DNA of 64,000 nucleotides, from the sequence record LC494302.1. One strand, 5' to 3'. The notes beneath the pieces were generated by a model. It was not told where the DNA came from. It did no database searches and saw only the letters and a list, made by a program, of their open reading frames with translations. Below are positions 11,396 to 14,652 of the stretch, one piece after another. The position numbers were made by a program, and so were the translations under genes. How positions within the stretch are numbered: position 1 is the stretch's first letter; the number at the start of each line of letters is the position of its first letter.

Positions 11396-11497
<102 letters not shown>

Positions 11498-11837: not shown

Positions 11838-12251
<414 letters not shown>

Positions 12252-12308
12252 CTAAATAATTCAGTACTGAGGATATTAATATGTTTAAAGATGAACGTCC
12301 AGATTTGT

Positions 12309-12346
<38 letters not shown>

Positions 12347-12351
12347 GAATT

Positions 12352-12692
12352 CCACAATCAGACGTATATGGTGTAAGTTACGTCGATGCAATCCAGAACA
12401 AGATCTCTGGTACTCTAGGAAGTGGTGAATGTTAACCTAGACGGGTTTGATAATTGGACGATAGGCAATTATTACTTGACTAGCAGGTTGAAACTAGAGG
12501 TGACAGTCCTTCACCAAACTGGAAAACCGGATGGACTTTTATTTAAAAGGGTAAGGCGTGGAAATATGTTTACAGAAGTTGCTTTTAGTAGCCTGTACGC
12601 CCCACGTCAAGGTAGCCGAAAGGCAAGTTAAAACGGATGGTTATAAAGCTGAATTAACAGCGGCGTTTAAAAGCGTCACCATCCATTTTTTT
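12352..12692 (+). ncRNA. putative ~330 nt structured non-coding RNA
   Basis: Own promoter, GC-richer than flanks, at least 8 hairpins, closes with GGATGG/CCATCC stem and T-run. Confidence 0.6.
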
Positions 12693-13029
12693 AATTAAAG
12701 TTGGTGATATGAGTGTTAAAGACATTTCAAAGTATGAAGAGTTTCTTAAATCATTTTTGAATTCAAAATTAACATCTAAAGCTTCTAAAAATTGGAGTGA
12801 GGATAACCCAGAAATCCGTGTTTTTAATGAGAACGATGAATCGTTTATTATTAATGATAACGAAATTGTTTTTGAATCATTAGAAGAAAATAAAGAAATA
12901 AAAAAACTAAAATATCCTACGTTACGAGATATAGTAAATAGTTTAAGTACTGAATACATTACTTTCAAGCTATGTGCTGATGAAGCAGATGAATTCCAGA
13001 AACGAACAGTATATGAAAATGTGTTTCCG

Positions 13030-13088: not shown

Positions 13089-13473
<385 letters not shown>

Positions 13474-13949: not shown

Positions 13950-14304
<355 letters not shown>

Positions 14305-14307
14305 ATA

Positions 14308-14394
<87 letters not shown>

Positions 14395-14449
14395 GACTGC
14401 CAAACAGCTTGAAGTACTTTGTAGTGCTGCACCTATGCCGACACTTGGC

Positions 14450-14550
<101 letters not shown>

Positions 14551-14562
14551 TATCTTACTTCT

Positions 14563-14652
<90 letters not shown>

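Follow-up and report, generated by a model that had tools for sequence, protein, structure and literature searches.

The locus in phage SP27

The window, a stretch of 64,000 nucleotides from sequence record LC494302.1, comes from Escherichia phage SP27 (Asteriusvirus; 100% identity), with window position 12300 corresponding to record position 74300. SP27 is a jumbo coliphage, and the interval described here lies inside a loose cluster of six tRNA genes. In the deposited record it falls within a 457-nt unannotated gap (12252-12708) flanked by two hypothetical genes. An earlier sequence-only reading had placed here a stand-alone structured RNA gene of about 330 nt, led by a consensus promoter and richer in G+C than its surroundings. 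The last two points hold: G+C is 0.37-0.41 at 12300-12700 as against 0.27-0.31 in the flanks, and the unit (12318-12692) begins with a near-consensus promoter and ends with a stem followed by seven T residues. The main features are:

12318..12346, plus strand: sigma-70-type early promoter (TTGACT, 17-nt spacer with an extended -10 TG, TATAAT; 11/12 match to consensus)
12348..12540 (3' end approximate), plus strand: module A, a structured RNA of ~190 nt with hairpins P1 to P6 and three pseudoknots, represented by a covariance model
12551..12692, plus strand: module B, a long hairpin, a GAAA (GNRA) hairpin and a three-way junction
12686..12692, plus strand: run of seven T directly 3' of the closing stem, the putative terminator of the unit

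Transcription would start at about 12352-12354. A promoter is found at the matching position before module A in RaK2 and in two further loci (L014, L015), and RaK2 and L015 carry a weaker AAATTTTAATT at the position of the T run. A simple terminator scan does not call the T7 site because the closing stem encloses a junction. Judging from these signals, the SP27 tRNA island contains a non-coding transcription unit that runs from promoter to terminator over 12318-12692, the roles of promoter and terminator being predicted.

The promoter is one of a near-identical family of early promoters (11839-11866, 12248-12277, 12318-12346 and 13089-13117; motif TTGACTAAATAGTTCAGTACTG(A)TATAAT). In the copy at 12248 the -10 is degenerate, and downstream of it comes a remnant of 9 codons (12282-12311) resembling the 5' end of the gene at 12709. 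The SP27 cassette is flanked by this duplicated promoter and gene-start sequence, an arrangement that suggests recombination at repeated early promoters, i.e., promoter-mediated shuffling of modules.

Two tRNA genes of the neighborhood are unusual. An aberrant tRNA-Arg(UCU)-like element at 11396-11474, directly after tRNA-Ser(UGA), scores 29.3 bits with the Rfam tRNA model, just at threshold, and is silent in ARAGORN; compared to the tRNA-Arg at the same position in phages Sharanji and EJP2, it lacks most of the D arm and has an insertion of ~18 nt 3' of the anticodon loop. For the tRNA-Ser at 13128-13219 the predicted anticodon is ACT, with A at position 34, an unusual choice for AGY/UCN decoding. 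A second candidate region, 13970-14570, showed no conservation across phage families.

Two modules with separate distributions

blastn divides the interval into two modules, A and B. Module A is shared at 81-94% identity by four unrelated phage groups: Asteriusvirus and Alcyoneusvirus (RaK2-like jumbo phages), Bragavirus (T4-like Straboviridae of Proteus, Morganella and Shigella), and Novosibvirus (T5-like Demerecviridae of Proteus). Identity is 52-60% in T4-like phages of Aeromonas (Ishigurovirus and Ceceduovirus) and in a 120-kb IMG/VR contig (L009). Module B is missing beside the module A copies of Bragavirus, Novosibvirus, the Aeromonas phages and EJP2. The neighbors of module A in these phages are:

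PM2 and SdyM006: tRNA-Gly upstream, tRNA-Asp downstream
Proteus phage 1: tRNA-Leu upstream, tRNA-Ser downstream
Aeromonas phages avDM6, AP1 and P19: tRNA-Pro upstream, tRNA-Thr downstream
Morganella phage Mm5: a CDS upstream, tRNA-Glu downstream
EJP2: its own promoter region upstream, tRNA-Ser downstream

When embedded among tRNA genes, as in the T4-like and T5-like phages, the 5' end of module A abuts the encoded CCA of the upstream tRNA and its 3' end stops a few nucleotides short of the next tRNA. In the jumbo phages, module A has its own promoter and no adjacent tRNA. The Aeromonas copies have an extra 80-100 nt with two hairpins between module A and tRNA-Thr (L003 2590-2670; L007 1590-1667), which is missing in the enteric copies. 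The record of Morganella phage vB_Mm5 (L141) annotates tRNA genes on the strand opposite to the ARAGORN calls.

Module B as a whole is found only in jumbo phages. A TTGAAC-17-TATAAT promoter separates A and B in RaK2 and in a RaK2-like metagenome contig (L016). In a divergent jumbo-phage contig (L015), B lies further downstream behind a different promoter, with other genes in between. The two parts of module B also occur apart. The long hairpin, B1, is found alone in Kuravirus podophages, and EJP2 has a paralog of B2, comprising the GAAA hairpin and the three-way junction, flanked by tRNA-Ser and tRNA-Arg (L142 1493-1600). The B1-like hairpin in the early region of Kuravirus XT32 (L006 1488-1580), over which an antisense "hypothetical protein" is annotated, may be part of a larger unannotated RNA.

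Because A occurs without B, B has its own promoter elsewhere, and the halves of B occur apart, the interval is best described not as one RNA but as two independent structured RNA genes, each apparently mobile horizontally by itself. Of the gene of about 330 nt postulated at first, the stand-alone transcription unit survives in SP27; the single RNA does not. In SP27 the modules are probably co-transcribed as one precursor, since no promoter lies between them there. That they also act as one molecule of ~330 nt is improbable. SP27-type phages have no clear terminator between A and B either, and conservation of the entire unit in the genus is 97-100%, but in most lineages the modules stand apart, separated by a promoter or by other genes, and no covarying pairing between A and B is seen.

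The cassette is dispensable within the genus, because two otherwise syntenic Asteriusviruses, Sharanji and phAPEC6, are without it. Both keep the promoter and the initial 36 nt of A (leader and P1), joined to the RBS of the downstream gene; nothing further of A and no part of B is left (natural deletion allele at L148 1195-1300 in Sharanji).

In the sequences searched, the modules are restricted to phages, and the copies with known flanks sit in phage tRNA clusters. No blastn match at E<=1 was found in 72,556 plasmids and 5,426 E. coli genomes, a search that short similarities could escape; the idea of a mimic derived from the host was discarded on this result. Across 185,579 species genomes, the core motif gave only three matches, all judged to be chance. 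Exact-pattern scans (four of IMG/VR, one of a metagenome and one of genomes) returned the same lineages only. A loose 14-base pattern gave more than 112 loci, which were dismissed as chance; R1, the covariance model of module A described below, rejected all 100 of those searched (the 12 loci L123-L134 were left out). Two further matches (L017 and L021) were set aside as low-complexity, CTAG-rich chance similarities.

Other RNA elements lie near some of the copies. The minus strand of L015 carries, at ~762-612 between module A and tRNA-Arg, a promoter-led candidate RNA of ~150 nt ("module C") that is closed by a 14-bp stem, GGTGAGTAACATTG/CAATGTTACTCACC. A group I intron (Rfam, 104 bits) is present in L016 at 2460-2692, ~1.8 kb downstream of A and B.

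Structure and covariation of module A

The covariance model R1 was built from a seed of seven enteric copies and six hand-derived hairpins. It recovers 16 distinct full-length homologs of module A with scores of 68-250 bits. The alignment fitted to R1 (A6) was used for counting the nested helices: pairing holds in 97.6% of cells, and compensatory (both-sided) change is seen at 23 of the 35 pairs among the 16 homologs. The covariation score, which rests on few independent lineages (the enteric group, L009, and two Aeromonas genera), is 0.475, compared to 0.05-0.08 with the partners shifted by 1-3 columns and 0.18 after shuffling. The elements of the fold are:

12352..12355, plus strand: PK1 5' strand, CCAC in the leader, pairing with GUGG (12422-12425) in the P3 loop
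12361..12384, plus strand: P1 hairpin, GACGUA/UACGUC (12361-66/12379-84), both-sided changes in 5/6 pairs
12393..12410, plus strand: P2 hairpin, CCAGA/UCUGG, variable in length, with a UUCG cap in L009
12414..12441, plus strand: P3 hairpin, UCUAGG/CCUAGA, 100% paired with 4 compensatory pairs; its loop contains the PK1 3' strand GUGG (12422-12425)
12449..12473, plus strand: P4 hairpin, GAUAAUUG/CAAUUAUU, with the invariant loop GACGAUA; two helices (4-5) in the covariation test
12474..12497, plus strand: H-type pseudoknot of P5, ACUUG/CAGGU (12474-78/12484-88), and PK2, loop CUAG (12480-83) with CUAG (12494-97)
12499..12536, plus strand: H-type pseudoknot of P6, GGUGA/UCACC (12499-503/12511-15), and PK3, loop GUCC (12506-09) with GGAC (12533-36)

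The three pseudoknots were first spotted by eye and then purposely excluded from R1. They are 93% paired, compared to 24-45% when the strands are slid, and compensatory changes are present in each of PK1, PK2, and PK3. The PK1 pair at columns (5,97) is CG in 10 sequences, GC in 5, and AU in 1, and the strands are GCAC:GUGC in Aeromonas phages and CUAC:GUAG in L009. The PK2 pair at columns (167,182) is UA in 13 sequences and AU in 3, with strands CAAG:CUUG in Ceceduovirus. PK3 varies at the pairs (192,222) with GC 9, AU 6, and GU 1, and (193,221) with UA 11, CG 4, and UG 1; its variants are ACCC:GGGU, GCCC:GGGC, and AUCC:GGAU. The topology indicated by these pairings is one in which the leader joins the P3 loop, the P5 loop joins the downstream CUAG, and the P6 loop joins the 3' tail. 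The invariant U.G and G.U pairs of module A are compatible with the plus strand only. The tail segment, CUGGAAAACCGG, gave no covariation support either for a local hairpin CUGG/CCGG or for the long-range CUGGU:ACCGG pairing proposed by RNAalifold; the local hairpin may be specific to the enteric lineage.

Single-sequence folding is weakly above chance: z is -2.2 over the full interval and -3.4 in module B, and module A by itself, at -1.0, does no better than its shuffled versions. Since these values are weak, it is covariation, not folding energy, that argues for more-than-chance structure. Every stem listed in the sequence-only reading is present in the sequence where that reading placed it, including TAATTG/CAATTA, which corresponds to P4, and the stems are kept by compensatory changes in the homologs except for the invariant GCC-GAAA-GGC of module B. 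Hairpin P5, the three pseudoknots, and the two-gene make-up had escaped notice.

Conservation is uneven along module A. Invariant columns number 40 of 93 in the 3' half (P4 to PK3) and 19 of 96 in the 5' half, and many of the invariant nucleotides in the 3' half are unpaired. Such a core, in which three pseudoknots are combined with numerous invariant unpaired bases, is no less typical of a ribozyme or an aptamer than of an RNA that binds protein. A ribozyme, e.g., one that cleaves itself or processes the tRNA precursor and frees the neighboring tRNAs, would fit the compact core with its invariant unpaired bases and, in the T4-like and T5-like phages, the 5' end placed against the CCA of the upstream tRNA. 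It is nevertheless quite unlikely: no Rfam ribozyme family matches even at E<=10, the jumbo-phage copies have their own promoter with no tRNA to free, and the host enzymes RNase E and RNase P together with exonucleases suffice for the maturation of phage tRNAs, as is the case in T4. Even less probable is a small-molecule aptamer, either riboswitch-like or serving as a sponge for a signaling nucleotide. The size, the pseudoknotted architecture, and the conserved junction nucleotides are like those of large aptamers, but module A lacks an expression platform and is not followed by any one kind of gene, its flanks being tRNAs, promoters or another RNA, and no riboswitch family of Rfam matches.

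Structure of module B

Module B shows 95.8% of cells paired and 8 compensatory pairs, compared to 29-42% paired in slid controls, in a comparison of only five informative sequences. Its elements are:

12551..12601, plus strand: module B1, a long interrupted hairpin of GGCG/CGCC, UACAG/CUGUA, and GUUGCU/AGUAGC, with compensatory GC>CG and CG>UA changes, also present in Kuravirus XT32
12615..12624, plus strand: GCC-GAAA-GGC hairpin, invariant among the four copies that have B2 and missing where B1 occurs alone in Kuravirus
12635..12684, plus strand: module B2, a three-way junction with closing stem GGAUGGU/ACCAUCC and hairpins GCUG/CAGC and GGCGUU/AGCGUC; 5 compensatory pairs

The GCC-GAAA-GGC hairpin shows no covariation because the four B2-bearing copies are identical and the Kuravirus copy is without it. 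One of the two B2 junction hairpins changes completely in sequence between phages. The closing stem of B2 and the U-run probably also end transcription in SP27. B2 appears, however, to be more than a terminator, because the EJP2 paralog keeps the covarying stems and lacks the U-run.

This bears on the possibility that A and B are cis-acting elements of tRNA operons (processing spacers, stabilizers, or terminators) with no function in trans. The embedding of the RNAs in tRNA transcripts in several phages, and the double use of B2 as the stem and U-run that end the SP27 unit, would be expected of such elements. The EJP2 paralog runs counter to it, as does the 81-94% conservation of A in unrelated phages with different flanking tRNAs and with a predicted promoter of its own in the jumbo phages; furthermore, a spacer does not need three covarying pseudoknots. 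A purely cis-acting element is thus given a low probability, similar to that of a ribozyme.

Coding potential and genomic neighbors

An alternative to an RNA gene would be a small protein, encoded by the ORF at 12422-12631 or that at 12558-12698, or else a site acting at the DNA level as a target of recombination or homing. A 69-codon ORF starting with GTG is present, hypothetical proteins are annotated here in some records, and homing endonuclease genes lie nearby in some phages. The frame 12422-12631, whose conservation had been named as the result that would count against an RNA gene, is not conserved: 12 of the 16 homologs have in-frame stops and there are frame-shifting indels. The variable columns are spread over the three codon positions as 28/22/28 of ~42 each, with no third-position excess. 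The ORF has no proper RBS, and selection at the RNA level is suggested by the compensatory changes and by G.U pairs that fit one strand only. The protein-coding reading was ruled out by the stops, the indels, and the lack of codon-position bias, and a small protein or DNA-level site taken together is the least probable of all the alternatives, to a degree that is close to negligible. With the covariation, the disrupted frames bear out the original proposal of a promoter-led, non-coding structured RNA in the tRNA region. Spurious hypothetical proteins are annotated over modules A and B in many Asteriusvirus and Salmonella-phage records.

No constant gene follows module A; next to it come tRNA-Asp, tRNA-Ser, tRNA-Glu, tRNA-Thr (after ~80-100 nt), a promoter, or module B. 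Nor was any conserved neighboring protein or co-occurring gene found near the copies, the neighbors on both sides being different in every lineage. A cis-regulatory role is unlikely on this evidence. Because the neighbors differ in every lineage and no protein is conserved, action in trans would be more likely than action in cis.

Comparison with known RNAs

Searches against Rfam 15 (4227 models including ribozymes, riboswitches, RNase P, tmRNA, 6S, Y RNA, group I intron, ROOL, and GOLLD) gave nothing at gathering thresholds. At E<=10, the window and its sub-regions gave chance matches only (HIV-1_SL3, 12.5 bits; WT1-AS_7, 8.9 bits). The module A or B homologs in L003, L009, L015, and L016 have no Rfam match either. 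The failure of the sequence-only reading to assign the RNA to a family is thereby upheld even at permissive thresholds.

Stable non-tRNA RNAs of phage tRNA clusters, T4 species 1 and 2 and the T5 RNAs, have been known since the 1970s; ROOL and GOLLD came later. To our knowledge, none of the orphan RNAs of phage tRNA clusters has an established function. The entry "stable RNA with unknown functions" appears in the tRNA regions of both the T4 and the T5 record, eight times in T5. T4 rnaC and rnaD (species 1/2) and T5 RNAI, III, IV, 1, 2, 2H, 3, and X are small non-tRNA RNAs inside phage tRNA clusters, co-oriented with the tRNA strand, and module A too is encoded within such a cluster and in the orientation of its tRNAs. 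The likeness to T4 RNA C and D that had been drawn is one of context only. There is no homology of sequence or structure to module A with its three pseudoknots: R1 found no match at E<=10 in the T4 rnaC/rnaD locus (L008) or in T5 20000-50000 (the tRNA region), the T4 sequences of that locus contain no module A motifs, and blastn returned no Tequintavirus. Moreover, the 3' end of T4 rnaC is a T-arm-like sequence, whereas module A has no tRNA-like part.

tmRNA resembles module A in having a series of H-type pseudoknots, and it is tRNA-related. Module A differs in that neither a tRNA-like domain nor a tag reading frame is present (ARAGORN and Rfam negative). A tRNA or tmRNA identity was rejected, neither ARAGORN nor Rfam calling one in 12348-12692.

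ROOL and GOLLD are structured phage and prophage RNAs with pseudoknots, often near tRNA islands, with no known protein partner (10.1101/2024.12.08.627333). They share with module A the niche near phage tRNA islands and the presence of pseudoknots. They differ in being 3-4 times larger (580-800 nt vs 190 nt) and forming multimeric cages, and they have no Rfam relationship to module A. Their hosts are mostly Firmicutes, Actinobacteria, and environmental bacteria, whereas module A is found in enterobacterial and Aeromonas phages. Self-assembly of module A into an RNA-only multimer, as in ROOL and GOLLD, would accord with the shared niche and with the PK2 strands, which in most copies are palindromic (CUAG) and could pair between molecules. 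The small size and the missing Rfam relationship make it highly improbable, and the Ceceduovirus strands CAAG and CUUG cannot self-pair, though pairing in trans would still be possible.

Phage PhiTE carries a pseudo-ToxI at a distance of ~300 nt downstream of a phage tRNA gene (PMC3475682 Table S2). It is a phage-encoded pseudoknot decoy that binds protein and is compared here together with the type III antitoxin RNAs ToxI, CptI, and TenpI. The units of TenpI are H-type pseudoknots with A-stretches (PMC12283969), and P5/PK2 and P6/PK3 of module A are also H-type pseudoknot units. Module A differs from ToxI and pseudo-ToxI in having no tandem repeats, no nearby toxin gene, no detectable similarity to bacterial or plasmid DNA, and no Rfam match. 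Tandem Repeats Finder at score >= 30 reported no tandem direct repeats (~34-45-nt unit) in module A, and the Rfam search revealed no similarity to any known decoy or antitoxin RNA. A resemblance to actual ToxI and pseudo-ToxI sequences was rejected as evidence, since it consists only of the words GCAG, CUAG, and AGGUGA, noticed post hoc.

Module A thus constitutes what appears to be a new RNA family among the orphan structured RNAs of phage tRNA islands, new with respect to Rfam 15, T4, and T5, with the 10,006 unnamed viral RNA candidates of a 2023 catalogue (PMC10690425) standing outside the comparison.

Proposed function and significance

Modules A and B are, with high confidence from their covariation, functional structured non-coding RNAs. 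The explanation that we favor, by a modest margin over even chances, is that of two mobile structured RNA genes, separately expressed or processed, whose stable products bind protein in trans. In the jumbo phages the RNAs would be made from their own early promoters. In the T4-like and T5-like phages module A would be cut from polycistronic tRNA precursors by the host tRNA-processing enzymes. Each RNA would then accumulate as a stable molecule, its stability coming from the knotted fold, and would bind a host or phage protein in trans. Protein binding in trans, taken as a claim of its own, is put slightly below an even chance.

The most plausible single role would be that of an accessory decoy or inhibitor, acting in counter-defense or in translation. 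A decoy is favored because of the patchy, laterally mobile distribution and the precedent of PhiTE; that the role is specifically an anti-defense decoy is nonetheless a speculative proposal, with the balance clearly against it. Equally doubtful is that module A represents a new functional class of RNA, either an RNA-only counter-defense decoy passed among phage families (e.g., one inhibiting a host RNA-targeting nuclease) or a new class of ribozyme.

Module A is a small and tractable case, 190 nt with a well-defined triple-pseudoknot fold. Natural knock-outs exist in one genus (Sharanji and phAPEC6 without the cassette, SP27 with it), and near-identical copies are present in phages of T4-like, T5-like, and jumbo type whose hosts are easily handled in the laboratory. 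For these reasons module A lends itself readily to deletion, complementation, pull-down, and structural studies.

The modular layout, with separate promoters and pieces that occur alone, suggests that RNA genes are shuffled between phages like the protein "morons". If module A is indeed such a new functional class, phage tRNA islands in general would be shuffling depots of small RNA modules, among them A, B1, B2, "module C" of L015, and the orphan RNAs of T4 and T5, and there would at last be a testable function for orphan RNAs that are 50 years old.
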